A DNA stretch of 64,000 bases from Marsupella aquatica (taxonomy: Eukaryota > Plantae > Marchantiophyta): positions 12,771,375 to 12,835,374 of the forward strand of contig OZ316897.1 of the NCBI GenBank assembly GCA_973895155.1, in the 5' to 3' direction. Of this stretch, positions 158 through 63,239 are shown piece by piece (the stretch's first letter is position 1; every line of letters starts with the position of its first letter). Both the position numbers and the translations under genes were made by a program. The notes beneath the pieces are model-generated. The model did no database searches. It was not told where the DNA came from and saw only the letters and a list, made by a program, of their open reading frames with translations.

Positions 158-3100
158 TTACAAAGTGGGGAAAGCCTCAATGACTGGACGAGTATCTTGG
201 GGTGTCAGGATCATCTCGCCGTCCTCTCCCTTTGTCGCAATGGTGATGGTACTATCCTCCCCATAATTAGCATTTTGTGAAATTGTGAGTTGAGGAGGTG
301 GTATCCATTGGTCAGGGACCATCAAAAAGTACGTGGACATAGCCTTGCGAAATCGCTTCTTATACTGCTTTGGTGAAATAACAGTCGGTGGTGCATTCTT
401 TGGGCCTCCCAGAAAACCTGATGCTTTGACCCAAGTCTCCAGGTGCTTGTCCCATGTGTATTGCCTAATAAAATCGATAATTCCGACAACAAGCTCTTTC
501 CGCTCTACGTCCACCCCAACCAGTAGAGAGTAATCCATGACGAAAACCAGCTGTTTTAAACATGCAAAACGAAAATTTAGGTAGTGCACGGCGGACATTG
601 CAAATTCTCACAGGTAACAAGCAATAATAAACTCTAGATAGATAAGTTCTGATAAAAACCGCCTGAAAGACAAACTCCAATCCGAATTAAGAAAGTACAA
701 AACAATGCTAGGTGCGTGTTCTCACCGAAAGAAAATGGGTATCGTTCCATATAGCTCGCTCCAAAAGCCTCTTTGCATTCTTTCCGACGTATATGGGATT
801 GGTAGGCAATTCTTCCACAAGATTTTGATCTAATTTTACTTGACTTTTTCCAGTTTCGGAATCCGCGTCCGCGTTATAACGAGACCGCACAGACCCCTTA
901 AGATCATATACCCGGGTAATGTGTCTGTCGTACAAGAGATTCTCCATAACTAGAACATCCATTTTGGTTTCCTTTCCACCCTTAATCGTTTTCACCTACA
1001 ATCCAAGATCGAAATTAGCCATACTTCGTTAATTTATGACAACCTTTCCATACGACATTGCTTCTAAGGAATTTGCAATCTCAACGGTCAGTACAACTTG
1101 TACGCGGTCACAGTATATTATCAACGGAAGAATTAGATTTGGTGCTGCACAGCTTTCTAGGTACTCACCTCATATACCCCAAAAATTTTCGCAAGACACG
1201 TTGGGTTCCCGTTTATCAAAGCTTCAAATAGATATTTGAAGTACGAGGAAGCAAAGTCCAGAAAAGACGTCAACTCCGTCTTTGTGACTTGTTTGACAAC
1301 AAATCGGTCATCTGCTGTTTTCGCAAAAAATACATTACTCTTTCCACCTTGGGCTCCCCACTTTTTACATCGGCTGAGAGAGCGGATATACTCGGTACTT
1401 CCCATGCAGCATTTCTTCCTCAATGCATCAAACTGCTTCGCAAAGTAGCAAGTCACTTGGAACTTCACCTTTCCTGATGGGGTGTCCTCACAGAAGCTTA
1501 TGGTTTTCTTTACCAACTGGGAAGCTTTCGTCGATATGAGTGGATTTTCAATTTCAGACCCTATTCTCGAATTCAACGCTGTATTGGAGCCAAAGTTCTC
1601 CCTCACTGCACCATCAACTTCTCCACTGGCATCAGGGATCTGTAGTGGATGAGATAAAGCTTGTTCTGAACTCAAGTCCCCTGAATCCCGATCTTGGTCC
1701 TTTTCTTTGGCCTTCTCCTTCTCAGCAAGAAGGTCTGTTACATGAACGTAATGTTCTTCTGTCGAGAGTGCATAGGCGATCATACTAGTTGGCTCTTCAT
1801 CGTACACAGCAACCACAACATCATCGTGCCCTTGAGGAAGAAGTACTCGTCGGGCATTTCCATCTGCATCTAGTTGCGCCGAAGCAGGAATCTTCGATGG
1901 AAGTCCAGGAGGTGGAACCTTTCCGTCAGAGCTGTTAGAAAGAATTGAAGAAGTACGGCTGTAACTCTTGAAAAAGCTCGCAAATGGATCTCCCATCCAT
2001 CCTTCCGTCAGGCCTGTTAATTCTTCTGAGCTGTCCAGCTTTACTGGTGAACTGGGAATGCTTACCTGCCCATCACTGGTGTCACCAGCATCATGAGAAA
2101 CTACATCTTGTGCACCAGCCTCCGCGGGAGGTTGGTCCACAGAGGTTCCTTCTTGGACTGATCCTTGTGACTCTGGATCAAGACATTCCTCATTCGCCTG
2201 CACAGTGTCAACCACCTTCTCTCGAGACTCGTCAACTCCAGGCACATCTACAGAGCCTGCATCTCCTGTCCAAGCCGCATCTAGGGTATCAGAGAGGTCA
2301 GCAAGAAGCGGATAATTGCCTTCTGACAAAGCTCTGCGCGCAGTAATTTCTCCTTCTAAAAATCTGGGAGGACTCGCTCTCGCAGTTGCACTGTCAAGAT
2401 CTTCAACGGAAGCATTGTGTTCGCCTTCAAATGCTCCGGTACTGCCAGCTTCCCCGTTTGTCTCCAACAACGATGTTGAAATTTTCAGGACTGACGTTGC
2501 GTCTACTATCACGGACTTTGAGCCTGAGATACGCCCCTTATGCGGTGTGACGTCCATGCTATCCAATAATTCTTCTACAAGACGTGACTCTTCATCCATC
2601 GGCAGCCTAAAGTCCAGACCGTTTCCATCAGTTAACTCTATTGATGTTGGAACTAAAGGATCAAGACAGTTATTCTCTCTCACACTAGTACGGTCTTGTT
2701 CAATGCCAGTCAATTGCTTCTCAGAGGGCTTTTCTTCTGCAATTGTCTGATCTGATGGGCTTGATCCTAAAAAGCTCCTGGAAGTAGACTCAGGATCACA
2801 GGACATAACGTCTGGACTGGAAGATTCTCTCTCCGCTTCTGAAGCTTCATTCATCTTTACGCTGCCAGGTCCGATATCTAACTCCTTCGCTGATAGCATA
2901 GATGGATCGCCAACAGAACCTGTATTGCGCCTCCGCGTAGGAAGACACTTTGATACCAGATATTCGAGTCGCCAATCCCATTGGAGCGAACTGATGAGAA
3001 GGTCTCTACGCAACCTGTTTAGCTTCAAAATGTCTTGACCTGATCGTGACAGCGCCTCCTGATTTGATAAAATAAGTGTGAGAAAAGGCTCTTGTAACAA

Positions 3101-6100
3101 TGAATCAGGGGATGTTGGCAAGAAAATTTACTATTACTTCTGATCTACATCCACAACATCAGAATGGAGCTACAACTCTCTCATTTCTAAGAACCTCTTT
3201 AAAAATTAATATCGCCTGCAAGGCCTTGATCATCTGCAGGGAGCACAATTCTACCTTACCTCCAACACAGATTTTTCGTTTTGCAACAATGTCTCCAATG
3301 CTACGATCCTCCGTTGTGCATCGAGAGTTGCGCTATTGCCACAGAGGGCCCTTGCACTCTTGATTTTCCCTCCTAATACTAAAAGCTTACTAAAGACCTT
3401 ATCAAAAACGTCGTGTGCCTGTTTGTCGACCTGCACGAAACACATTCCAGTCTTACCAAGGTCACCTCAAATCCTCACCAATCCGCAAACAAATAATGAG
3501 GATAACGGCTAATCATAAACCAATGCACTATATCCCATTACACTGACATATTTATTGCAATAAAACTGATTGTAACTAAACATCTTGCACGGGTGGAAAA
3601 ATACATGCAGAGAAGTGCTCCTAATATTTCATGATACAAAGCAGCACTAGTTACGTCAATTCTTCAGACCGGTGAAAAAGCACACCCAGATAGGTTTTTC
3701 AGTGCGAGTGGAAGTCCTGGAATTAAGATAAATACCTCTTCTTTTTCTTTTTGAAGCCAGCCCTGTTGCTTTGAAAGATTGAATTCCAGCTTAAGAGGAG
3801 GAAGATAAAATGAATGGATAGTGATCTCACTATATCGAAAGCAAGCCACCATAGAGCCAAATCTGCGTAGACGGACAAGCATCATAAATTTCCCCATCGT
3901 AAGAAAATCAGTAACGAAGTCTTATTGGCACCAATACCATCCATGGCACCTATCTGAGTCCCGGGCTGACTAAGTTAAACGGTCTACATAATGAGAGACA
4001 GATATAGAAGCGTTAAGCGTGACGTATTTATACAGAAGCAGACCAACAACCTGCAGATTTATTGCAAACGGATACCCCTTGCTGGAACACCAGAAGGCAG
4101 GATAAATACAAAGGTGCCTACACTAATAGCATATCTTTTTAGTTGCACCCACTGTCGCAGCAAACCTGAAGAGAATGAAAAACTTCCTTCGTTGTTAATT
4201 AATTACTTATGTCATTGTTACAAGAAGGCCTGTATATTCTTACCCGTAAAACCGAAGGCAGTCTCTGTGCAGAGAATGTCCACACGCAGCCAGCCTGGTT
4301 GCTGCTGGGTGTGTTGAGAAACTCAGTTCCAAAAACTTTCCAAACGAAAGTCCCCACGCTGCATCAGACATGATGACCCTTGAGGTGGCAGGAGGAACGC
4401 CATTCTCAAGGGCACACCTAAGGCAACGATGCCACATCCAGATTCTTCCAGATTTTTCTCCCGACAAAGGATTATTGGAGTCCTTGTGGACTGTGATTGT
4501 CAGGCTACCCTGCCGATGAGTGTAGGAAAGCACGTGTTTGTCCCCAGATTCATCACACTGTTCACACGGACGGTTCTGCACATCCACGACGAAATCATGA
4601 GACCAGACTGGAGAGAGCGAGCGACACGGATATTACCTCCTTATGTGTCCAGATGCCGCACTAGCAAGAATCCAGCAGGGCATATCTACATGCTCACCGT
4701 TCTATGAGAAAATTTCCAAAATGCGACAGGACTTCAAACAGGAGAGAAGACTAAGTTCAAGTCAACATCTAACAATGTTATTCACCGCCAAGCACACAGA
4801 AAAATGCTGCCCTTGTCTCCAAACACAATATCAGAAAGGTGAGTCCAAAGTACAAGACAGCCTTAGCAGATTCTGTTAACAATCTGAGTCCATCACGGTG
4901 ATAAACAAAGGCGACGAAGATTACCGTATCAAATATTGTATCTCGCAGGAACATTCCCAGGGGTTTATCACCATTCCCGTAGTATTTTATGCGCAAAAAA
5001 TTTGGCTGTTTGACCGCAGCTCCTTTGGCAAGACAGCGCTTAGAAAACTGAACCAAAATACTTTGACGATCTGATGGCGAAGGGGGGAAATCTTCTTTAC
5101 TTCGCTCCACTTCAGACTGCCGATAATTAGGCTCATTTTGAATCAATACACGTAAATGGGCTTGAACCTGTTCCGGCTCAATGTGATAGTCATGACCAGA
5201 TTCCCGGATAGTCCCTTTGCTTACCATACTAGCAGTTGTAGTCACTATCTGATCGGAATTTGAGGACCCGGATGAACCCCTAACCGTGTTCACTTCTAGA
5301 GCTTTTATCTCAAATGCTAAGCTTCCGTCCCCACGACTTGATGGGGAATCTGAAAGATTGGCCTCCCCATCAAGGTTACCATCCTGTACACCTCTCTTCA
5401 AAGAGACTGACAAACCTGAAACGCCTTGCCAAGATTGCCCACCGGGATAAACTCCATTGCTGGCATGGTGGTAGGTAGTTGTCGACGTTCCTCCTATGGA
5501 TGAGCTTCTTGACATTTCAGAAGGGTATCCAAACGAAGACTGGGCTGGACTTGTTCCTGGCGAATTGGTGGCTGATGACCCACAAGATGATGATGCAGAA
5601 CGCACTCCAGCATTTGTGGTCGTAGAAGCAGTATCCAGATTGCTGAGTGCGGCAGATGCTCCAATACTATTAGCTCTTGATAGAAAAGGGGAAATTGATA
5701 CAGTGGAAGACTGTCCACTCCTGACTTGCTGGCCGTGGTGAGAGTCTGCGATTGCCACACCTGGAACAGCAGATATTGACCTTTCATAAATTGTATGCCT
5801 GTTATGAACTGAAACGTTCGTCGAGTGTCCAGGTAATGTGGCACCCTCATCTTCCAAGAACGAGGTTTCCAATTGTAAGTGATAAGCTGAAAAAACTGCT
5901 AGTTGGACCACTTCTTTCACTTTCTTCAAGAAATCACCATTTGCACCCTTGAGAAGGATCTGAAATGCAAGATACGAGAACACAAGTGTCAATCCTTCAG
6001 AACAAACGTAGAAAAAGAGGACGACATGCAGAAGAGCCAAAAGGGACAAAACCGACATTCATGTCCATTATATGTATACCAAATTAAACTGTAAAACAAC

Positions 6101-9100
6101 CAGCACTTGCACCGACTCAGAAACTTTCCACTACAGAAGAACCAAGAGCATTCTCCTGCGCTCTAAATGGACAATCCAAAAAGCCCAAAACGTAGCATCT
6201 GCATTAAAGATCAACGCACCGTGCATCCTAAAGGTTTGGGACATCCCTCGAAAAACATCAGGAACTTCGTTAATTGCTTGCCTCCGCCAGCACTACCATG
6301 CTCTTCAACAAATCTTTCTACATGAAAAAGGTCGCAGTGCACTGCCTTGGGCGTCACAAGGTTGTCAGGGGATGACACCACTTGGCCACCGACACATCTA
6401 GCAATGCGGTCCAGTAAAGGCCTCTTCACGTTTAAGACGAGCGAAATCTCCTTGTTCAGTAGGATGTCCTGAGCGTAACGGGACACAGATTTCTCCACCA
6501 AAAGAACGTTTGGGTGGTGAGCCTCGATCCTTGCCACTGTCATTTTAAGATGCTCATTTTCCTGTACACAGTCAGTAATACAATGAGAGAGAACTTCTAC
6601 AGTAACAAATTTATTTCCGAAAATAACAATAACGTGTTCAACATGATACTGATGCAAAACGAATCTCCAGATTATGACCTGGGGTTGCCAACGCGGCCCA
6701 TAAAAGTTACACAGATCACACAAGGGAAACCACGCATTTAAAGTAACGTGCGATGAAGATTAGAAACAATCCACGATTGCGATGACTTCTCTTATCGAGG
6801 GCCAATACATAGACCTCGATCTAAGACTGACACCAAAAAACCATTCATATCATCTCCAGCATCAGCAAACAGACTTGCCTGATTTAAAAGTGTGTCTAAT
6901 GAAGATAATTGGTTTGACACTCGCTGGTATTCAAGAGCACCGGCTAACAGCAGCAATCTTGGATTCTTGTAACGAGAAGTCATTCGCTTATGTGCTACAT
7001 TCTTCCGGAAAACGATTCCCTTCACAAGCGCACTGCCCACACAGAGCACATTAGTCCCCCAGGCTTGCTTTGGGGTGCAAAAGTAGCAAAAGTTGACTCA
7101 AATTAACACACTCCATATGCATCCGCGTCCAACATTAATCGGGACTTTACCTTTCACTGGGTCGCCCGGAGGCCACGCATTTGACTTTCACGTATGTACC
7201 CGGATCCATACCGCCTCCGTTACTCGTGTCCGGTTTAACAAGGCTAGCAGCAAGCCAAGAAAGAGAAGTTACAATCTCCAACCAGCTGTCAGGGTTACCT
7301 GGCTCCCCAACCTCAACACCTTTCTGCTGAAGGAGCTGGGCAACAAGGTTCTCAAAGTGCATATGAACTTGTGCCCGCATGGCTTTTTTATGTTCATCGG
7401 ACACTGTTTTTTCCTTCTTGGTGTCCACGCTACCCACGCTACCTGGAGACCTTGGAACAGCCCACCCAGCTCCTCCCTCCTCATCATCATCATCGTATTC
7501 GACAGGAGTTGTTCCCGCATCATCGTCGTCATCGTCATCTTGATCATCTGCAGGAGGAGGAGGGATCCAGATCAAAGGGTTTTTCTCAAAATTCAAAGGG
7601 GGGTTATCCTTCCTTGGAATCTCATCGCCATATGGAAACGCGTTCTCATTCTCCTCCGTGCTTTCAGAACACCCCTTTCCATCGCCGCTCTCCCCTCTTC
7701 TAACACTATCGCTTCCATCATCAGACGGGGGGTTGTGACCAATAGAGCTTTGGGTACTGTATATGCTTGATTCGATCTTCCCTTCGCTGTCCCTAGGGTC
7801 CTGCGCAAGCTCCGAGCTACTCTCATCTTCATAATCCTCCGCTTGATCTTGTAACTCATGCGCTATCGGCAAGCCCTCCTCTTCATCCTCATCCTCCAGT
7901 TGCCTTCCAAATTCATCTTCGTCATCCTCGCTCCTGCACGACGGCCCGACAAATGGTCAAGAACTGCTTCACGCGAACCTTCCAGCCTTCCTAAAAAGCA
8001 TTCTCTCAACTCGTTCAAATCGAGGAGCCCCATGAAAACCCATCCCACCCAGCACCTTGATTCCCACAGATCTAGTCAGCATTCTAATGAAAACAACCAC
8101 AGTAATCTGAGAGGCCGGCAAGCTTCATTTCTTATAACTTTTTCACAAAGATTGGGTGAGGCCTTGTAGATCAACATTTGACTTTCATGTTTTACATCCT
8201 GAGCCTCCAGGGTTACTGCCAATAGTCATAACAAAGGCCAAATCATTTTCCAAAAAATCTCAATTCAAAAGATGGGACGCCAGGTAGAGAAGGCACACCA
8301 GACAAGACATCCCTGCAACCCTCAAATCTGAGACTACTTATCTATAACTAACATTTGCAAACCAGAGCCACCAGGCGATCGGTTGATCAAGCTTGGATTC
8401 AATCCATGGTATTCTACAGGAACAAATGGACGGGAAAATAATGGGAACAAAAGGACCAACAGATTGATTATTGCAATACTGCACAGCTGAATGAATACAG
8501 GTACTACCCGTTCAATTTAGTAGGGTACGGAAATTTGGGATTTCCGGCAACGAATACTTCCAGCAGAGTAAAACACACAGTGCTCCAACGTTGACTAACC
8601 TGTAACGGTCAGGGCTCGGAGGCTGATCCCTTGCCCTACGTGACATACTGCCAAGGACCCTCGAACCACCCTGATCAGTTCTCATTGCGTGCATTTGTTC
8701 TGAAGATTCGTCGAGTTCTTCATCCCACATACAAGGAAGTCGGTCACCGGGTGGTCCACCAGAAACGGCTTGCTGGGGTGAAAGCGGCACGACTGACGCA
8801 CTCGCTCCCAAGGCACTACTATTCACGCTTTGCGCTGATAAAGATGGAGTCAATGTAGTGGGATTCTCTTCGGTCGGTGGGGTACTATCTTGCTCAGTGA
8901 GATGAAGCTTGTAACAGTAGTTACAAACACGGACGCGTTCTCCCTCCTCGTCGGGAGCACCTTCCTCTACTGAGGCAGGAATCGTATTAAGTGAGCACTT
9001 TCCGCAAAACACTTTGCCACAGAGGCGGCAATGATGACGGCGATTGAACAAACCGAACTCAGACTCACAATCGAAGCAAAAACGACAGCTACGGTCGGGC

Positions 9101-9219
9101 ATCCAAAAGTCTCTGGACATATTAGGACTGGAAGCCTGAGCTTCAATTCGTCCTCCTCGTGGGATCCATGAATAGATCCACTCCAAGACGTCACTTGCAG
9201 AATTGGACGATGGTTCCAT
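158..9219 (-). CDS. FAB1: 1-phosphatidylinositol-3-phosphate 5-kinase FAB1/PIKfyve (FYVE-containing, FAB1A/B type). Inferred coding exons: 9219-8600, 7933-7151, 7032-6879, 6561-6220, 5959-4925, 4575-4244, 3862-3736, 3430-3260, 3058-1169, 995-726, 550-158
   Basis: FYVE domain (WMPD..Cxx[13 protein letters not shown]). CCT/Cpn60-like domain ([45 protein letters not shown]). FAB1 Cys-rich region ([34 protein letters not shown]). PIP-kinase domain ([59 protein letters not shown]). The exons join in frame at splice signals. Confidence 0.97.
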
Positions 9220-39406: not shown

Positions 39407-41033
39407 TCTCAGAGTATAATGCCTTGGGCAAAATATTGTGAAGATTTTTCTCTAATTTAACTAAGGTTAAAGAAAATAAAATCTCCGATGCCTTGAAGTC
39501 TGATAAAGTATTATTTGGTCAGAACCCGAACTGAAGCTCTCTTTTTTGGGGCATTGTATCCCATATTGCACTCTAAACAGGACTTCAGTGCATTCCAAAA
39601 ACCAGTTTCACCCCCAGTTTCACCCCCAGTTACACCTTCTTCAGCTGGCCACGATGTTCAAACGCACCGTCGGCAAGTCGGCCTCACCAGAATGATGCGG
39701 TCGCGTGGCCCCCAGCCGTGCGCCGGAATCAACCACTACAGTAACCGTATCACCGCTAATGATTTCAATTTAGACTCACGATCTGCGCCTAATCACCGAG
39801 TCTGTCGTGGATTCACAAGCCCAGCGCCAAAATCTACGCTCCTGACCGTCACCGCTAATGCGGATTAGGAGGGACTGATCAGAGATCCAGGAGCGGTGAA
39901 CGAGACGCCGTTTTAAAATTAGTAAGGCCGCGCATTGTAGTGTTCTTGCAGCGTGAGTGGGCCTTCTACGACCGGTAAGGAGCGTTCGGATGGGATCGGC
40001 GTGTTCTTGTAGCGAGCGGGAGATGCCGTCTTGGCTTGAAGCTCGATTGAGCGGCAATCTGTCGATGGTCGTCGTGTGAGAGAAGACGTGTGCTGCCTCT
40101 TGAGAAGAGAGCTCGGCAAAACATGCAATCAAAGTAGCAAAATCATCGAAGGGAAAGGGAACACGATCGTCGGGTGTTGCGTTGTTCCTCGCGGGGATCG
40201 TTTCTGTCGTGGACCTGTACTTTTTTTCTCCAGTTTTCGTACAGTGGTTGGTTTATTGAGAGCGGAAAACTCGAGACTGGAGCGGTCGATACGCTCGCCG
40301 TGGGAGGAGAGGGGAGAGGAAGGAAGGAGCTCGATGAACATAAGGATAGAGATCGAACGAGGACAGGAGGACGATGCGTATTGTGGATGTGTTGTCGAAG
40401 GAGAGGCGGTGGTGGTCTTTCGGGGAGGTGTTCGTGAGCCGAAAGTCTCGGGAGTGATGATGCTCTGGCCCCGATGATCTTACGGGGTTGTTGGTCTTCT
40501 TCCTCATTGGTGTTTTTACGTTGCGAGGAGGCGAGAGAGGACAATGGAGAACGGGCTGCTCGTGGAGGTGGTGGAAAATTTGTTTCGGAGGAGCAGCAAC
40601 TGCAAGAATTTAGGGTTTCAGGCTCATCGGCTGCGTTGCTCCGAGCTTTTTCTTGGTGCAGGTGGACCTTAGTCGTGCTCTTCTTGCGCTCTACTGTGGG
40701 CAGCGTAATCTGTAGCTCTGGTTTTGAGGGGACCACTGGGTTTGAGCGGGGTTTTTGTCTTCCGCAGCCACGGTTTGGTCTTATTTGGCGTGTCTTGGTG
40801 AGTATATTTCGTCTTTCCTGTGAGTGAGAGGCTATTGATGTGGGTTTCTGCTGATGCATTATGTTGGCAGTAGTAGAGTTGACCGGCGAGCAAACCGGGC
40901 AGACTTGCAAGACGATGCTCAAATTTTGGAGCGCGGTTTGAATGGAAAACTCGTCGGGAATGTGCACAATGTGTAGGTTTATTCCTCCGGCGCGCGGTGG
41001 CCGCAGTTCTTTCTTGTTACTGGCAATGTTACC

Positions 41034-44000
41034 ATGGATGATACAAAAACTGTGCACGCCTTGGAGCCTCCAGCAGAGACGACGGGTCCTGAAAATAGCG
41101 TAGGTAGTGGTGCAGTGCCCAGCTCGGTGGTGGGAAAAGAAGCAGATAAAGAATGTGTTCCTCCGCTGGATTCGTCGAGGCTTTCGCCCCCGACGGTTGG
41201 CGTCACAGCTTCGCTCTCGCCGTCAATTGCAGAGAAGCCTTTAACTCGTGAGGCGAGTCCCAAGGGGGATGAAAATGATCAAGTGGTTGATGGTTCCGCG
41301 CTTGCTGCTTCCGACGAGCAGGATACTGTAGCCGGGGGAAAAAAAATAGTTTCAGAGTCCACAGCTGGGGACGGGCGTCCTGTTGAGCTGCCTTCCGTCG
41401 GTATTGCAGGTAATTTTTTCACCTTTTCGTAGGGCTTTGTTGCTCTATTGATTTTTCCAGCTCCCAATACCACTTTTGACGTGGTTGCCGTTGTAAGTTT
41501 TGGCCCGATTTGGCACCCCCGAAACTGTCCCTGCATTATCTGGCGAGGGATGGGGGTCAGAAAATTTGCGTTCATTGGTGTGAAGTTGGTTCGCTGTTGG
41601 CTTTGAGCTCTTCCAGCGGAGGAAGTAGATGCTACAATGAACCTTTTCTTGAGTGTAATTCAGCTTTTGGCTTAGCCTCAATGTGTTATATCAGTAGGGT
41701 CAGATTCGGGCGGTGAGAGCTAGAACCCCCTTGTCGAGGGGTTTAGAAGTGCAGCATAATTTTTAATAAAACTCCCTTCTTCTCTCTGCCAGTCTTTCCG
41801 TATGGAAGATCTTGAAGTGTGAGTCAACTGTCGCGGTAGGGTTAATGTGTACATGTTGTATTGTCGTCAATAGTTAACTTTTGGTGAAGGAGATGTTTCT
41901 CAGTTTCCAAATCGCAGCTCTCAGTTTTGGAAGCACAGTAGGTATCCGTTTCTTTGCCGTTCTGATAGGAGTGAAGTTGATCGTTACGGATCTTTTGACC
42001 CACCTTTACTGTGGACCCGTGGAATATAGGTGACACATGTTTGAATTAGCCTTCCGAGCAGGTGCTTCCCCGTCCTGCTTTCAGATGTCCACTCAGAATG
42101 ATACGGAAATTATTCTCTAAGGCGTGTTTCTTCTCGCAGGAGAATCTGCAGCAATCAGCAGTTCACATCAGCCGCAAGAGGAAAAAGCTGAACCAGTGGA
42201 TTCGCAGAAAAGAACTGACGAAGTAAAAGAACGGATTGAGCCTGGCAACTCTCAAAGTACTGATAGTCTGAAGACTGGGGAGTTGAATGGGGCAGAGGGC
42301 ATAGCCCGCTGGCCAGGCAAGGGTGAGAGAAGGGCACTGACAACACTTTCAGAGTCAACCTTGATGGTCGTCATGGAGAAACTTGTCAGGTATTATGATC
42401 TTCTTCCATAGAAAGGGTTTAGTTCACTGAGCGAAATGCAGGTCCAGGCTCCTGCCAAGTTTAGGCCTAGCGGGTACTGGGATTCCCTCTGGAAGCTCAA
42501 ATCATCAGCCTTGAATTGGGGTTCTGTTCTGTTCTGTTTTATTTATTTTCAAACCCTGTGCTTTAGAGTTACTTCTAGGTCGCAATGAAGAAGGTGAGAA
42601 GAGAATTACTTCCTGTTACTTGTCTCGTGCATCCTCTCTAGGTCTCGATAAGACTGATTAGTCTGAAGGTATAGAATTTTGGTTGGTACAATCCGCTTTG
42701 TGAAGAAGTGCTTTAAGGTGAGACGTGAAGCTTACATCATAGAAGTTCGGTAATAGAAGGTTATGTAGACTCCGCGGTGATCATCAGAATTCCCACCTAA
42801 ATGAGTATGTTGTGCTTGATGGGAGCAGCCTAGATCCAACTGAGGTTTTCAAGGACCCGGTGGATGATTCCTTCGCTCCAAACTACTCGAAAATCATAAA
42901 AACTCCAATGTGTTTCTCAATGATGCAAGAGAAAATTGGTCTGCAACAATATCCCTCTTGGAGCTTGTTTGTGGTAAGAACAGACATGAACTGTAGAGGA
43001 ATCCTTTTATCCTATGTGCTGTGCCAGTTTAGAGATCTTGCAGTGTAGGGTTGATTTGTTTGTTTCAGAAAGTCAATATAGTTGAAAGCTTGTGAATGAG
43101 GCAACTTGAAGGCGACAATGGTATTTGTTGCATTTTTTCTTGCAGGAGGACTTCGAAAGGATTTGCTACAATGCAATGAAATATAATCAAAAGCGCTCAC
43201 GGATATGGAATGCTGCGAGCACGCTTCTCCGGCAGGGTAAGAAAGTCATTGAACCTTACGCTGAGCAAGGAGACTCAATGTTGGCCATCGGTAGTGCGGT
43301 AGAGCCTGAGGCCGAAGCTCAGGACGCAGCCAAGAATGGTGCAGAGGACGCAAACAAGAATGCTGCCCAGGACTCAATCAAGAATGACGTTCAGGATACA
43401 GTGAAGGGTGTCGCTCAAGATCCTGCACCGGCTGTGATATTTGCTGCAGAGGAGAATGTTACCCAGGTGGCAACTGGCACTGCTGATGAATTGGTTGAAG
43501 ATAAGGTTGTTGATTCTGACCAAGGAGGTGTTCCTGAAAGGGAATTTGTGCCAAAGCCAGACTCGGAAATGGTAGAAGTAACAGAAGTTGCAGTTACTCA
43601 TACTGACCTGGTTTTGAAGAGTTCACAAGATGGTGGAAAAGATGAGGTTGCTATACCTGTTGATATCAGCACGGGGACGGTGGAACAGTCGGTCACAGTT
43701 GCCCCTGCTATAGTAGATTCTCTTATGATACAAAGCGACGAGCTTCCTCGCAAAGGAATGTCCATGTCGACGAGGGCCAATCATGTGAATGAAGAAGTTA
43801 AGGTTGAGATTCTGGATAGCACAGGCTCTGAAGACGTGCGGCCTGATTCTCGAGATGAAGCGACAGAGTGCTCCAGCTCTTTTGGTTATACCCAAAGTAA
43901 ATTGGAGAGTGATCCAGAAGCAGATGGATTTCAGCAGAATGCAGAGGTTGAATCTGAGTTACGAGATGGGAATGGGGCACTGAGTTCTGCTTATGCTGAA

Positions 44001-47000
44001 GATGACGAGCTTGCAGGTGGAAACGAAAGGTATGAATCGCATCCATATGGATATACTGGATTATACAACTTGCGATTTCTACACAAGCGTGCTTGTATTC
44101 TGGGGTTTTGGAGCACACGTGTTGGCCTACAATTGACCGAAAAGGTGCGTCCTTCGTTGGCATTTTATCCCTCTGCAGGGGAAAGAAGGCATTGAATGCA
44201 GAGTGGAAGAAGTACAGACGGGGAATTGAATGGAGATGTCGTTGGCTTGAAATCCGATTGAATGAGTTGCGTGCAAGATCTGAAAGATATGATCGCCTGT
44301 TGGCGGAGAGGAGGGCAAAAAAAGCATGGTTAGCAAATGTGCAGCCTGGTGAGGAGTCCTCTGCCCGATCTGCTCAAATGGTAGATAGCCCTGAAAGAGG
44401 ACGTGTATTGCGGCGCATGCGAAGGAAACAAGTGGAAAACACTGTGGACTTGGATTTGTACATGGCAAGACATCCTCTTTTCTCAAGATACGGTACTTAT
44501 GGAGAATCTAAATGTCCGTACCTGGTGCAACCATGCTCTTTGATTGCTCTAGAAGTGTATTCAATCATCAGTTGGTAGTTGCAGGCTTCTACAGGAGAGG
44601 GGCTACAGCACCGGTGATGACCTCTGCTAGTATATTCATAGCTGCATCATAGGTTTAAAATAATTGAAATTCGCACTAGTCTCTCTCTTTTAGGAATGCT
44701 AATCGCGGGTTGTATGTACAAGACTCTAAGAAAGTGATAGGACACTTTCCATTGCCCATCCTTTAGGTTATATTTAGAAGGAAAGGAAAGGATTAGAGGG
44801 GTGAGAATCCGCTGGTGCATTCATCACGTAGCAGCCTGCTTTATGTTGCTTCGGCATTTTGCATTTCGCCTTAGATTATCTGCACTTCAGTGTTGATTTC
44901 CAGTTATTCTTTAAGTAGTTCAGTGAAAGAACTCATCTGTACTTCTTAGAGCTTCTTGATAATCTGTTAGGGTAGGTTTGATCATTTTTTTCCAGGTCTC
45001 CTTTCTTGTACTGCATCTGCGTTTTTCTTTACCTTTTGGTTCGTTCGGGATTTATTATGTAAAGTGGGCAAGTGCTAGGTCTGTGTTATGTTTCATTGGA
45101 CTCTAAAGAGTTGGCCCTTCGATTAACTTTGCAGACAAAAAGAAAAAGCGAGAAAATGAGGATACATTTATGGAGGCAAAGATTGACTCATTCCAACAGA
45201 CGCAAAACCCGCAGAACCGTATGGCTACTCCCCTGTGTCTCCTGTTGTGACGGTTATTACTTTTGTGCTACATGGAGTCAACCATTATTGTTATTGGTGG
45301 AATCCTGATCTTTGGCGTTAGTAGTCGACTAAAGCTCCAGAACTTGGGAACAGCTTTTCTTGTTCTGGTATACCTGCTTCCTAGGAAGTAAGGCTGTGCA
45401 GATCTATAGTAGGCGTGTTTAATGAATTAAGACATTGTTCCTGAGTACGACATTGTCATTGGAGGAATATCCTAGTCCTCCTTCCGTATGATGTTGTTTG
45501 TACATTCTCCTTCTTTCGTAATCATACTTGCATCACAGAGTCTGCTTTAATGCATCTGTTATTTGGCTGTACCCCATTGTCTTCCTCTCGTCGCACAGTT
45601 GTTGAGCCAGAGAAGCGAGTTCCGGACGAGTCAGACACTGAGGAGCAGCTGGTGGTAGGACGGTCATCTCTTGGAGGACAAGATTCAATGGAAAAATTTT
45701 TGTGGAAGGTGGAAGCATTGCAGGCTAGAGTAGAGAAGGCCCAGGCACAATTGCTGAAAGGAGCTCCTCCGAAGACTGTTCCACAACCTTTGACTATTCC
45801 AAAGCCTCCAAGCTACTTGTCTCGTTCTTTAAGTCAAGCATCTCCATCTCCACGGATATTACCTGCAGGTTCTATTCCGCGTCCTCCGGGGACAAAGGGC
45901 CGCCCTCCTTCCGGCCAATCACCTGGTTTGTCCGGGACTCCGACTGCAAATGGAGTGTCCCAAAGACAGGGTTCTGGGCTACTTCGAAGAAAATCTTCAG
46001 ATTATGATATCAACAATATGGTCATGCCAGTCAGCGTAGGTGCCAAGTATGTGGAGCACATTAAGCATGCCGATATCTCGACACCAAATTGGCGCCTCAT
46101 AGACAATACTTCGGCAGCTGATCAGTCAAACGGTGGCAGCTCTAGTGACGAGGTTGGCCCTGTTATCTGCTTTCCCAATTCGTAGTATATTGTTGCGTTT
46201 CTAAGTTTCTGAAAGATTAGGCCTTAGAAATCGAGTAAAGAACTACAGTATTTGATCCGAAGCCAGACTTTTGTGTGTCCATTATATTTTTCTAGCCCAG
46301 AATGTCGGTGCTGTTCATCCTACCTTGCAACCCGTGACCCATGTTGAAAGAACAGTTACTTAAATGGGAAACTTGTACCAGTTCTCCCCTAGCGCACCCC
46401 GCTTCCCTGACTTTCTCCTTCTCCTTTCTCGTGTATTCACCTTATCAGCCAGCCCGGTCCTCGCTAGCAGCGACATTTATCATCATTCACAGCATTGCGT
46501 GAAATGTCCCTGTGAGAGTTTCCTTGGCTCAGAATTTTAAAATACTTGACATTTTCCAATCTGGACTGTGCCTCGACTAGTAGGAATTGTTTTCCTCAAC
46601 TGGGTAGCCCTGTCCTAATGTGTGAACTACAGACTCGTGGCGCTCTGCATGGGTATGGCGTTCAAACATAGTGATCTGTGGTGTTGTGATTCTGTGCTCT
46701 CATGAAGATACGCACAATGGTTATTTTTACATGCATGGATTGCGCACGATGAATCACCAAAGTTGTGTATTGTCCCTGTCTGGAAAGTCCTGATTTTTGT
46801 CTGAAATTCGATTGATACAGGACACAGATGATGAACAGTTTGAGATCCGACATTCAGAAATGGAAGTAAATGAGAGGAAACATCGGTATATGCTCCCCAC
46901 GAAAAGAAGTCCAGATGGAGATGTCGCTGGGTCCGGAAAGGGGAGGTCCAAGTCTGGAATGGGGAAGGGTGCGGGGAAAATGTCTGGTCGGGGTAGTGTT

Positions 47001-47381
47001 CCAACCAAGGTAGTTGCAGTTCCTGCTGTTGAGTCTCCTCCAGACTCTGGTTCCTCTCCTGCATTTGCAGGTTCCATACCTAAAGGTAAGCGACGAAAAA
47101 GACTTTTCAACGCAACAGCATTTACAACAAATCGTGCTCACCGGTTAACATCGCATTTAGGGGAGCCTTCAGGTTCTTTGCAAAGTCCTGAAGGTCCCAG
47201 GGAACGTATTCTCATTGATGATACAGTAGACGTAAGGACTAGTGAAGAGACAAGTGCAGAACTCGTGATAACCACTGAATTAGAAAAATCGAGTGTACAG
47301 CCCCTCCAGTCTGTTGATCAAGCTGATGCAAAAAAAAAGAGACCTGCAGCCTCTGGGTTGCAAGTCCTTGCTAATCCCTAG
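41034..47381 (+). CDS. Bromodomain + KANSL1/NSL1-like (coiled coil, Win motif, PEHE domain) chromatin protein. Inferred exons: 41034-41409, 42140-42389, 42829-42973, 43146-44029, 44179-44492, 45135-45218, 45599-46152, 46821-47381
   Basis: Bromodomain: LDPTEVFKDPVDDSFAPNYSKIIKTPMCFSMMQEKI..YPSWSLFVEDFERICYNAMKYN. Coiled coil: EWKKYRRGIEWRCRWLEIRLNELRAR. Win-like SSARS. PEHE-like RRKSSDYDINNMVMPVSV..VEHIKHADISTPNWR...EDTDDEQFEIRHSEMEVNER. All exons join in frame at GT-AG. Confidence 0.9.
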
Positions 47382-48476
47382 CCTTTCCTATGTAGGCTAT
47401 TTTGAATGTTGCAACATTTGCATGAAGTTCACGAAGGATTAGGATGAACTGTCGAGTTAGGCCAGGGAAGGGAAATTGATTACCAGTAGGCTATCCTTAT
47501 CAAGGATCCTCCTTTTTGCCTTGTAAAGATGTATGTACGGCTTTGTGCAAGCATGAGTTCATTACCTTGTACACATTCCCGCGGGTTTGGTGCTCGTTGA
47601 CGCCATCCTGTAGGAAACAGTGAAGTTCATTCCATTTAATCAAAAAACACAGTGGAGACCGTCCGTCTGCAATGCGTCGAACAATTGTAGTTGTAGCTTG
47701 AGTGTTATGTTGAGAAATCAGGTATTGTGTCTAGTTGGCGTGCTCCTTCCATTCTTGTGGGAGCAGATGATTTTGCGTACGCCTCGGGCCCTTCGTCATA
47801 CGGATCATGAATACAAGGTACCGGCTCATTTATCCATTTTCGCAATGAAAGTCGACAGTAGCTGCTTGAGAAATCTCTAGACTCGTACTTCTTCTGCGTC
47901 AGATGATTTTGAGTTGTTCAATTGGCAAGTTATTATCTACCAATAATGATATTCTTTAACTGACGATGATGAACATAGAATGACGCTCCCATTAATCCCC
48001 TTGAAGTAACGGAAGTGGGTCGCAAAGGCCCTTCTTCTGGCATGAGTGATTCCTATTCAACAGATGAATGATCCCTGAATGTAGCCAACCAGCACTGCCT
48101 TGCCCTACTGGGACGAAGGCAAATAAGTCATGTAAGAATCATCGATGTCTCGATGTGTTAAATCAGAGGGTCCCTCTTGTGGTGTGGGTCGAGTTATACT
48201 GCCTCTTTTCTACGTGAGCCGAACAAAAGATTTGTACATCCAGGGAAGGTACAAAAATGTGCTGCCAGGCAAATTATAGCCTTAAAGTCTCACGTTATGG
48301 TATCTGTCCGTAGTTATCGCTGCACATGAGTTTCAATGTCAAAGCGGGATTTGGCTATTGCATTTGATCCGACCTTATCTTGTATTAGCCAAATGAAATT
48401 TACATTAATATAATCTAATATGTTTTCTTTTGCCTCGCTTGCAGAGCATTACTACCTTCCCTTAACAGCCGTTGCT

Positions 48477-54504: not shown

Positions 54505-55647
54505 TCATGGGGTAAACAAGGTGAGGTCTCCCATCCCCACATTTGCCGCAGCTGCAATTAAAGCACTGTCCCACTGCTCCAATCCGAACTTACCAAGATA
54601 TCTTTGTCCGATGCTTCGTTCGTCGATCCTCAGCACATCAGCCTCAACCATCTTAATAAGCTCGTCGACGGCCTCCTGAGGATACATCCAGCACCCTTTC
54701 AGCTGGAGGTTGTTATGCATAACGAAAGAATACGGTATGGAGATATCATCTTGTATGCCGCCCATGAGACTGATCCTCCCTCCGTGCCTCAGCGCAAGCA
54801 TTCCACTCCTAATGTGGGTCGACTTGGCAGCTTGCGGCGACGAGATGTCGAAATACACATCCGCTGGTCCGAAGCAGCTTCGCAGTGCGTTGGTCTGGGC
54901 CTCTACATCGCCTGTTATCTCCACGGTCTTGACCCGCGTGGGGCTTAGCGCAGCAAGCTTTTTCAAGATATCGACATTTCGTCCCATAGCTATGACCCTC
55001 GCGCCCATTGCAAGGGCAACGAGCACGGCACATCCACCAAAGGGTCCTGTTGCCGGAGCGACGATGACCGTCTCACCAGCCTTGACATTGACATCCCTCA
55101 GCCCGCCGTAGGGAACCAGCATTCGAAAAATGATTGCTAGGGATTCGACACTGTACCCCAGGCCCCCATCGCCAACACTCCCGAGGAGCTGTTTCTCGTT
55201 CAGCACATGACAATTCTCAAGCGGCACCTTCGCGTATTCCGCGTAAGTCGAATCTCTCCACTCCCCTGCCATCAGCTTCTTGCTGCCAGCAGTAAAACCA
55301 TCGACGATGCCGGACAGGATAATCGCACCGCTCGGGTCGTCTCTCCCTCGAATTGTGATGTCGAACAGCACAAGTTGGCCCGGTGTTAGCAGCGTGGCGT
55401 CTGGACCGACTGCTGCAATGCGTCCGATGGCGCTGTTGCCTAACACGAGCGGTGTGGGGAAGGTGTATGGGCGGATCCCTTCGTAGACCTCACGCGAGTA
55501 CGCTACAATGCCGGCTGCCATGATGCGGACCACAGCACTACCAGGGCTCGGCTGCGGGGTGGGAATTTTCTGGACATTAAGAGGCTCACTCCTCGAAGTT
55601 AGAACGAGGGCCCGGTGCGTCTTCGGCAGCTCTTGCTGAGAACCCAT
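54505..55647 (-). CDS. Intronless medium-chain dehydrogenase/reductase (GroES-like ADH_N + Rossmann), fungal-type, copy A
   Basis: 380-aa ORF: PTPQPSPGSAVVRI, PLVLGNSAIGRIAAVGPDA..GQLV, YAEYAKVPLEN, nucleotide-binding loop VAPATGPFGG, GGRISLMGG. No introns. Confidence 0.93.
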   Translation of the reverse strand: MGSQQELPKTHRALVLTSRSEPLNVQKIPTPQPSPGSAVVRIMAAGIVAYSREVYEGIRPYTFPTPLVLGNSAIGRIAAVGPDATLLTPGQLVLFDITIRGRDDPSGAIILSGIVDGFTAGSKKLMAGEWRDSTYAEYAKVPLENCHVLNEKQLLGSVGDGGLGYSVESLAIIFRMLVPYGGLRDVNVKAGETVIVAPATGPFGGCAVLVALAMGARVIAMGRNVDILKKLAALSPTRVKTVEITGDVEAQTNALRSCFGPADVYFDISSPQAAKSTHIRSGMLALRHGGRISLMGGIQDDISIPYSFVMHNNLQLKGCWMYPQEAVDELIKMVEADVLRIDERSIGQRYLGKFGLEQWDSALIAAAANVGMGDLTLFTP

Positions 55648-62096: not shown

Positions 62097-63239
62097 ATGG
62101 GTTCTCAGCAAGAGCTGCCGAAGACGCACCGGGCCCTCGTTCTAACTTCGAGGAGTGAGCCTCTCAAAGTCGAGACTGTTCCCACACCGCAGCCGAGACC
62201 TGGTAGTGCGGTGGTCCGCATCATTGCAGCGCCCATTCTATCGTTTGCACGTGACGTATATGAAGGTGTTCGCCCACACTCCTTCCCCACACCTCTCGTG
62301 GTAGGCTACAGCGCCATCGGACGCATTGCAGCTGTCGGTCCCGACGCGACGCTGCTCACGCCCGGCCAACTTGTGTTCTTCGACTCAACAATTGGAGCTC
62401 GCGACGACCCAGGGGGTGCCATATTCCTGTCCGGCGTCATCGATGGGTTTTCTGCTGGCAGCAAGAAGCTGATGGCAGGAGAGTGGAGAGATTCGACTTA
62501 CGCGGAGTACGCGAAGGTGCCACTTGAGAATTGTCATTTGCTGAACGAGAGACAGCTCCTTGGGAGTGTTGGCGATGGCGGCCTCGGGTACAGTGTCGAA
62601 TCCCTAGCAATCATTTCTCGAATGCTGGTTCCCTACGGTGGGCTGAGGGATGTCAATGTCAAGGCTGGGGAGACGGTCATCGTCGCACCGGCAACGGGAC
62701 CCTACGGTGGATGTGCAGTGCTCGTTGCCCTTGCGATGGGCGCAAGGGTTATAGCCATGGGACGTAATGTCGATGTCTTGAAGAAGCTTGCTGTGCTAAA
62801 CCCCACCCGGGTCAAGACCGTGGAGATTACAGGCGATGCGGAGGCCCAGACCAACAGACTGCACAGTTGCTTCGGGCCCGTGGATGTGTTTTTCGACATC
62901 TCTCCGGCGCAGGCTGCCAAGTCGACGCACATTACTAGTGGGATCCTTGCGCTGAGGCATGGAGGGCGGATCAGTCTCATGGGCGGCATACGTGACGACA
63001 TCTCCATTCCACATTTCACTCTGGTGCATCGCAACCTCCAGCTGAAAGGGTGCTGCATGTATCCTCAGCAGGCAGTCGGAGAGCTTATTAAGATGATTGA
63101 GGCTGATGTGCTGAGGATCGACGAAAGAAGCATCGGACAGAGGTATGTTGGTAAGTTCGAATTAGACGACTGGGACAGTGCCTTAACTGCAGCCGCGGAA
63201 AATGTGGGGATGGGCGAGCTTACCTTGTTTAGCCTGTGA
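62097..63239 (+). CDS. Intronless medium-chain dehydrogenase/reductase, fungal-type, copy B
   Basis: 380-aa ORF colinear with 54505-55647 (about 62 differences by manual count, ~84% identity). Same motifs, no introns. Confidence 0.93.
   Translation: MGSQQELPKTHRALVLTSRSEPLKVETVPTPQPRPGSAVVRIIAAPILSFARDVYEGVRPHSFPTPLVVGYSAIGRIAAVGPDATLLTPGQLVFFDSTIGARDDPGGAIFLSGVIDGFSAGSKKLMAGEWRDSTYAEYAKVPLENCHLLNERQLLGSVGDGGLGYSVESLAIISRMLVPYGGLRDVNVKAGETVIVAPATGPYGGCAVLVALAMGARVIAMGRNVDVLKKLAVLNPTRVKTVEITGDAEAQTNRLHSCFGPVDVFFDISPAQAAKSTHITSGILALRHGGRISLMGGIRDDISIPHFTLVHRNLQLKGCCMYPQQAVGELIKMIEADVLRIDERSIGQRYVGKFELDDWDSALTAAAENVGMGELTLFSL

Follow-up and report, generated by a model that had tools for sequence, protein, structure and literature searches.

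Known PEHE scaffolds and the Marsupella locus

KANSL1 (NSL1 in the fly) is the scaffold of the animal NSL complex, a long disordered protein in which a helix or coiled coil is followed by a WIN-type A-R-[ST] motif and by a PEHE domain near the C-terminus (PMC4018492). The KANSL1 peptide that binds WDR5 is DGTCVAARTRPVLS; its residues R592, R594 and P595 are conserved, V596 contacts WDR5 at a hydrophobic patch, and at the -1 position of the motif Ser is tolerated in fly NSL1 (Dias et al. 2014, PMC4018492). The other well-described PEHE scaffold is MSL1, a peptide of which has been crystallised with the acetyltransferase MOF (4DNC, 2Y0M). A gene of the liverwort Marsupella aquatica is described here which encodes a mostly disordered nuclear scaffold belonging to a streptophyte-wide family. 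It occupies positions 41034-47381 of the + strand in a window of 64,000 nucleotides (contig OZ316897.1, positions 12,771,375 to 12,835,374; assembly GCA_973895155.1). On sequence comparison, the protein is put forward as a streptophyte counterpart of the animal KANSL1-type scaffold, with a probability of roughly 0.6.

A 2019 review of the NSL complex gives Arabidopsis counterparts, assigned by sequence similarity, for MOF (HAM1), KANSL2, KANSL3, MCRS1, WDR5, OGT and HCF1, and enters a '-' for KANSL1. As that review lists no plant KANSL1, the question of a plant NSL-type complex has stayed open. The plant literature goes no further than annotations of KANSL2- and KANSL3-like genes. No paper was found that treats a KANSL1 or a PEHE protein of plants, an Arabidopsis NSL complex, or MpBromo7, the Marchantia polymorpha orthologue of the present gene. 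This agrees with the initial sequence-only reading of the window, which had known of no characterised plant NSL complex.

The order of the protein blocks is bromodomain, Trp-rich helix, WIN-like Ala-Arg-Ser and DYDINNMVMP...TPNWR...DTDDEQFEIRH. That a bromodomain is followed by three KANSL1-like motifs was the starting claim of the sequence-only reading. In the six-frame list of open reading frames (ORFs) all the motifs that it quoted are found on the + strand, in the order given.

The PEHE block

The two parts of the PEHE block are RRKSSDYDINNMVMPVSV...ISTPNWR at 45985-46095 and DTDDEQFEIRHSEMEVNER at 46821-46877, on separate exons. Exon 7 (45599..46152) contains a second conserved helix, DSMEKFLWKVEALQARVEKAQAQL (45682-45753), then a Pro-rich stretch, and then the start of the PEHE match, RRKSSDYDINNMVMPVSVGAKYVEHIKHADISTPNWR (45985-46095), which corresponds to Pfam PEHE position 1 onwards in the orthologues. 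Exon 8 (46821..47381) opens with the acidic helix of the domain, DTDDEQFEIRHSEMEVNERKHR (46821-46886). It continues into a Gly/Lys-rich tail with PKGKRRKR, resembling a nuclear localisation signal (47079-47102; PKGKR is conserved in the family set A3), and ends at the stop codon at 47379-47381.

The exons of the window were queried singly, and the annotated Calypogeia fissa orthologue P0193 served as the full-length proxy. Exon 7 alone had no Pfam PEHE match; an absent or weak match is expected of a single exon, as the last intron splits the matched region. Pfam PEHE (PF15275) was matched in 17 of 17 full-length orthologues with an intact block, from alga to conifer, at E-values of 4e-8 to 3e-3, always over profile positions 1 to ~47 and always near the C-terminus. 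The E-values were 6.8e-6, 7e-8 and 4.2e-8 in Spirogloea, 3.1e-5 and 8.2e-5 in Riccia, 1e-4 in Marchantia, 7.4e-4 (20.5 bits) in Calypogeia P0193 and 8e-4 in Physcomitrium. Among vascular plants they were 3.8e-4 to 3.4e-3 in Diphasiastrum, 5e-8 (33.9 bits) in Selaginella P0013, 1.3e-6 in Adiantum, 2.1e-4 in Ceratopteris, 1.9e-6 in Cryptomeria and 2.2e-5 in a conifer transcript. Scores in the family range from 17 to 34.2 bits, and the curated cut-off of 34 bits is reached by one protein, Spirogloea P0222 (34.2 bits). The C-terminal half of the domain (positions ~50-127) was not matched; the matches end at positions 44-50, with two exceptions at 66 and 72.

In the solved structures of MSL1 with MOF, the half that is matched here is the segment placed against the MYST acetyltransferase domain. 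A profile of seven family members with no or a partial bromodomain (A2) was compared with all solved chains, and its best two matches were 4dnc_D (E 0.0088) and 2y0m_B (E 0.01), both the MSL1 peptide from crystals with MOF. The aligned stretch reads PxWR…(acidic)…DDxx[FY]xxRHxxxExxE[KR], and the window carries TPNWR…DTDDEQFEIRHSEMEVNERK, the counterpart of the MOF-bound MSL1 segment. A profile of 40 short, mostly angiosperm members (A1) recovered no PEHE structure in the PDB, and phmmer searches of exons 5, 7 and 8 singly against the solved structures returned noise only.

The sequence RRRxSDYDINNxVMPxSVxxxxVExxRHxxIETPxWR…SSDEDTDDExYxxRHxxMExxER ranks among the best-conserved stretches of these proteins over the range from Spirogloea to the conifers; its DYDINN stretch sits upstream of the Pfam PEHE model. 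Conservation from the Zygnematophyceae to the conifers points to purifying selection on the block. Searches with the PEHE-block regions of Riccia, a conifer and Spirogloea recovered plant and algal proteins only, with no animal protein at E<=10 against 5.8 billion sequences. For the Selaginella PEHE region the ESM Atlas yielded only rows of low template-modelling score and no feature match of use. A few members already bear PEHE among the Pfam labels precomputed for the protein collection, so that the match has been latent in databases and undiscussed in the literature. Taken on sequence, homology to PEHE is highly probable for the half of the domain that binds the enzyme, and for that half only.

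The Trp-rich helix and the WIN-like motif

Exon 5 (44179..44513) is the hallmark of the family, as seen in its phmmer relatives and in the residues W, W, C, W, Y, H and P that are invariant in A3. It encodes the Trp-rich helix EWKKYRRGIEWRCRWLE, given in full as AEWKKYRRGIEWRCRWLEIRLNELRARSERYDRLL (44198-44302), of which the coil AEWKKYRRGIEWRCRWLEIRLNELRAR occupies ~44198-44278. No Pfam model matches this helix in the window exons or in the orthologues. The exon also encodes the WIN-like SSARSAQMV (44357-44383; core SSARS at ~44357-44371), followed by a basic patch, and the motif YMARHPLFSRY (44459-44491).

The Arg of the WIN-like motif stands ~25 residues past the helix and is at least 90% conserved in A3, in an otherwise variable stretch. 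The motif reads SSARSTQ in Calypogeia, SSARTSQ in Marchantia, CSRTVPV in Physcomitrium, ASRTVPF in Diphasiastrum, AARAAPV in Selaginella, AARTSN in Ceratopteris, AARTTPL in Cryptomeria and CARTRG in Spirogloea. The family pattern is A-A-R-T-x-P-[VLF], which fits KANSL1 at six positions of the published peptide.

A further conserved block, ATECSSSFGYT…EVESELRDGNGA, is found family-wide and lies at 43860-43979 (+ strand) in exon 4. It has the form ATECSSSFG…EVES…R(D/N)G and stands just upstream of the Trp-rich helix. Its S-S-S-F is invariant in A3, from algae to angiosperms, and belongs to no known domain.

The bromodomain

The whole bromodomain, with the two introns that it spans, extends over 42342..43253 in exons 2-4, as placed by Pfam and by comparison of P0193 with 6v1e_A. 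Exon 3 (42829..42973) encodes the ZA region (LDPTEVFKDPVDDSFAPNYSKIIKTPMCF…) and on its own scores 42.2 bits with PF00439 (E 7.9e-11; cut-off 21.7); spliced contigs support it on both sides, and its protein is 100% identical to P0193. Exon 4 (43146..44029) encodes helices B and C with the acetyl-lysine Asn, ICYNAMKYNQKRS, and then an acidic disordered linker; the exon-4 ORF matches Pfam positions 57-83, which correspond to the last helix. The domain scores 72.7 bits in P0193 and 64-78 bits in most full-length orthologues.

The closest solved relatives of P0193 residues 322-422 are BRD7 (6v1e_A, E 3.3e-15) and BRD9, followed by TAF1, BRD1 and BRPF1. The acetyl-lysine pocket keeps its Asn and Tyr, in that YNAMKYN and PNYSKIIKTPM align to NAMIYN and PGYSMIIKHPM of BRD7. 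By its profile score, which exceeds the cut-off, and by its pocket residues, this is a BRD7/BRD9-like bromodomain.

BRPF and BRD1 proteins are scaffolds of MYST enzymes, which the BRPF proteins hold through a different segment. In comparison with BRD7/BRD9 and BRD1/BRPF1 (family IV), the bromodomain is alike, with E-values of 3e-15 to 1e-10 and the pocket Asn and Tyr aligned. The likeness stops at the bromodomain, the liverwort protein being without PHD/PZP, PWWP and DUF3512.

Gene structure and transcript support

The gene has eight exons, defined by spliced RNA contigs and colinear orthologues; its 5′ end is uncertain. The RNA evidence consists of contigs aligned over 42100-47400; they derive from four runs, RNA or RNA-like, of as many separate studies, one of the runs being a polyA metatranscriptome of biocrust. 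The contigs are 90-99% identical to the window, from which it follows that they come from close relatives and that the match to the species is not certain. Six GT..AG introns are defined by them, at 42390-42828, 42974-43145, 44030-44178, 44514-45134, 45219-45598 and 46153-46820. The reading phases are consistent and every exon is open in a phase check across all exons.

The junctions form a chain along the gene. Exons 3 and 4, with the bromodomain, are joined by contigs X2 record 8 and X5 record 18. Contig X4 record 14 leads from the exon with the last bromodomain helix across intron 44030-44178 into the coil exon. Exons 5 to 6, 6 to 7 and 7 to 8 are chained by X2 record 11, X5 record 23, X1 record 7 and X4 record 17, of which X1 record 7 and X4 record 17 join exons 7 and 8. 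Exon 6 (45135..45218, + strand) is short and basic (KKKKRENEDTF…), and is placed by X2 record 11, X5 record 23 and its open frame. All exons from 42389 to 47381 are connected in phase by this chain, and the annotated orthologues of Calypogeia, Marchantia, Riccia, Diphasiastrum and Physcomitrium are colinear over the RNA-supported exons.

On the strength of the junction chain and the colinear orthologues, the bromodomain and PEHE exons are taken as one gene. The sequence-only reading had treated them as one spliced protein, which is confirmed by this chain, by the orthologues and by single transcript ORFs. It could be objected that the bromodomain and the downstream exons are separate genes, or that the motifs match by chance, given that no single RNA contig covers the whole gene and that the RNA runs are from relatives at 90-99% identity. 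With the in-phase chain from 42389 to 47381, the same architecture in more than 10 species and Pfam E-values down to 4e-8 standing against it, such an artefact is very improbable.

Towards the 5′ end, the borders of exons 1 and 2 (41409 and 42140) rest on GT/AG, phase and orthologue alignment only, with no read coverage. Exon 1 (41034..41409, + strand) is an ORF for a low-complexity N-terminus, with the donor TTGCAG/GTAATT in phase and tblastn matches of P0193 and P0192. Exon 2 (42140..42389, + strand) carries a linker and the first bromodomain helix (…TLSESTLMVVMEKLV) behind the acceptor TCTCGCAG/GAGAAT in phase. Its donor at 42389 is supported by RNA, and P0193 residues 256-337 align to it. 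The ATG at 41034 is a plausible start, giving a product of ~1,062 residues. The annotation of the Calypogeia fissa protein (P0193) extends ~130 residues further upstream, over 40474-40806 and 40926-41033. In the present window 40474-40806 translates to an odd, hydrophobic, Cys-rich sequence, and Marchantia has no counterpart of it. The Calypogeia extension is probably a 5′ leader annotated as coding sequence.

The coil exon has a second in-frame donor at 44492, 21 nt short of 44513, and both donors are used in RNA contigs. The short form drops the seven codons of GTYGESK and matches the Riccia proteins, so that the alternative donor accounts for the 7-residue gap between these and the Marchantia and Calypogeia proteins.

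Spread of the family

The 1,190-residue P0193 of Calypogeia fissa is 92% identical over exon 7 and colinear with every exon of the window, which puts the source of the DNA near Calypogeia among the leafy liverworts; the Marchantia, Riccia, Diphasiastrum and Physcomitrium proteins are likewise colinear with the window exons. MpBromo7 and the Riccia, Calypogeia, Physcomitrium, Diphasiastrum, fern and conifer proteins have the same exon-colinear architecture and show no difference in kind. A phmmer search with the coil exon (44180-44512) found 275 proteins at E<=1e-3, 95 of them at E<=1e-10, among 1.84 billion representative proteins. Members are annotated as 'hypothetical', 'uncharacterized' or 'Bromo domain-containing'. 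One Gossypium arboreum member (P0060, KHG13262.1) carries the GenBank and UniRef name '1-phosphatidylinositol-4,5-bisphosphate phosphodiesterase eta-1'; this is probably a mis-annotation, since all other members examined are unnamed.

Members were found in zygnematophyte algae (Spirogloea, Mesotaenium), liverworts (Riccia sorocarpa, R. fluitans, Marchantia polymorpha and Calypogeia fissa), mosses (Physcomitrium, Sphagnum), lycophytes (Diphasiastrum, Selaginella), ferns (Adiantum, Ceratopteris), gymnosperms (Cryptomeria, Welwitschia) and many angiosperms (Amborella, Aristolochia, Cannabis, Ulmus, Gossypium and others). The combination of bromodomain and PEHE is present in Spirogloea (P0221), liverworts, Physcomitrium, Diphasiastrum, ferns and conifers, and its co-occurrence over this range makes the fusion older than land plants. 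The architecture is shared by more than 10 species, counting annotated proteins and transcript ORFs; in P0025 both domains lie in a single ORF on a 2.9-kb transcript contig. Some members that seem to be without a bromodomain are probably truncated gene models, as in Selaginella, where the protein begins inside the last bromodomain helix.

In the flowering plants the gene is reduced. None of the 40 short, mostly angiosperm A1 representatives has a bromodomain, as the sequence-only reading had stated for angiosperm proteins with a similar WRCKW coil. Pfam PEHE is matched by 4 of these 40 (Selaginella, Ceratopteris and two transcript ORFs), all with an intact PEHE block. The ~36 angiosperm-type representatives have neither a bromodomain nor a PEHE match. 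The block is unrecognisable in Amborella and Welwitschia, and the degenerate Welwitschia copy has no Pfam PEHE match; the helix, CSSSF block, HPLFSRY and second helix persist in both. With the coil retained and the bromodomain and detectable PEHE gone, flowering plants keep a stripped version of the gene. The profile and domain searches place the loss of the bromodomain–PEHE fusion in the flowering plants, and the fusion's spread, raised as a question by the sequence-only reading, runs from Spirogloea to the conifers and not to the angiosperms.

Comparison with KANSL1 and MSL1

The plant family resembles KANSL1 in its WIN-like motif, where AARTRPVL of KANSL1 compares with A-A-R-T-x-P-[VLF] of the family, and in keeping the N-terminal half of PEHE; the order of helix or coiled coil, WIN-type motif and PEHE near the C-terminus in a long disordered scaffold is also that of KANSL1. 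It differs in its N-terminal bromodomain, which is absent from the KANSL1 domains as described in the literature examined, and in having no Zn-finger-like Cys/His cluster after the WIN-like motif. The liverworts also have Q for P at +3 of the WIN-like motif, and the PEHE match is confined to the first ~47 positions. The likeness to MSL1 lies in the crystallised MOF-binding peptide, which aligns as P-x-W-R … D-D-x-x-F-x-x-R-H … E … E-K, and in a helix upstream of the PEHE block. Unlike MSL1, the plant family has a WIN-like motif and a bromodomain, and the C-terminal PEHE half that binds MSL3 in MSL1 is unmatched. No MSL1 coiled-coil chain was among the A2 profile matches at E<=10, at the sequence level among solved chains.

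A PEHE-type MYST scaffold of some kind is the likely identity of the protein, judged from these comparisons. The PEHE half would dock a MYST enzyme, a HAM- or MOF-type lysine acetyltransferase, and the WIN-like motif would dock WDR5. The bromodomain would tether the assembly to chromatin that is already acetylated, coupling reading to writing.

Several findings weigh against a KANSL1 counterpart. Nearly all of the PEHE scores are under the curated cut-off, only the first ~47 of the 127 profile positions match, and exon 8 of the window alone gives 14.5 bits (PF15275, E 0.052, profile positions 24-48). The PEHE homology claimed by the sequence-only reading is upheld, for part of the domain, by the 17 intact orthologues and the MSL1–MOF structures. 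The WIN-like motif is short, and in the window SSARSAQMV has no Pro at +3. A-K-S-L-P-F is the form in many angiosperm members, with Lys replacing Arg in a motif that is still conserved, which suggests a partner other than the arginine pocket of WDR5. For the Win-like motif that had been proposed, conservation in the family and resemblance to the KANSL1 peptide are supported. Finally, conservation in the family is highest in the coil, CSSSF and HPLFSRY, which angiosperms retain in the absence of PEHE; the core job of the family may therefore not need a MYST enzyme.

The last of these findings leads to a reading in which no acetyltransferase is bound any longer by the PEHE-like block, a relic or look-alike, and the protein is a bromodomain reader acting through the family core. 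This core (Trp-rich helix, CSSSF, HPLFSRY and second helix) is common to all members, including the ~36 angiosperm-type representatives, and the mostly sub-threshold scores and the empty single-exon searches of solved structures fit the same reading. A relic is nonetheless improbable: the block is among the best conserved from the Zygnematophyceae to the conifers, implying purifying selection, and its conserved residues are those that align to the MOF-bound MSL1 peptide.

A different question is whether a scaffold that does hold a MYST enzyme need be of the NSL type. It could be MSL1-like, or descend from a single ancestral PEHE scaffold older than any KANSL1/MSL1 split, and may work with plant HAM enzymes in a plant-specific assembly without a KANSL2/KANSL3/MCRS1/WDR5 module. 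The only solved relatives found are MSL1 peptides, the PEHE half alone cannot separate KANSL1 from MSL1, and the bromodomain is nearest to the BRD7/9 and BRD1/BRPF group. The brevity of the WIN-like motif, its imperfect form in liverworts and its Lys in many angiosperms point the same way. Set against this, A-A-R-T-x-P-[VLF] and the coil-WIN-PEHE order fit KANSL1 (PMC4018492), and an MSL1-like identity is opposed by the unmatched MSL3-binding half and by the lack of MSL1 coiled-coil chains among the A2 matches at E<=10. Such a scaffold is judged unlikely, if somewhat less so than a relic.

The KANSL1-type reading extends to a wider proposal, which is tentative and carries less than even odds. 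An ancestral streptophyte NSL-type MYST complex, coupled to a reader, may have been built on a bromodomain-KANSL1 fusion, kept from zygnematophytes to conifers and dismantled in the angiosperms.

Other genes in the window

On the - strand, within 1157-9219, one ORF encodes a FYVE zinc finger (8515-9219, E 3e-19) and another the start of a PIP5K domain (1160-3121, E 1e-8). These ORFs are probably exons of a FAB1/PIKfyve-type phosphoinositide kinase gene. Two intronless ORFs of 380 residues in opposite orientation, at 54505-55647 (-) and 62097-63239 (+), encode zinc-type alcohol dehydrogenases.

Implications for plant histone acetylation

KANSL1 is lacking among the plant counterparts of the 2019 review, a gap for which the present family offers a concrete candidate. 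Since both the bromodomain and PEHE are missing from its flowering-plant members, it would be understandable that work on Arabidopsis gave no hint of it. With a built-in bromodomain, the protein would be a natural read-write module for histone acetylation. If the wider proposal of an ancestral NSL-type complex is true, an entire complex for histone acetylation has escaped research centred on Arabidopsis, and non-flowering plants possibly retain a MOF-type enzyme, or a mode of use of HAM.

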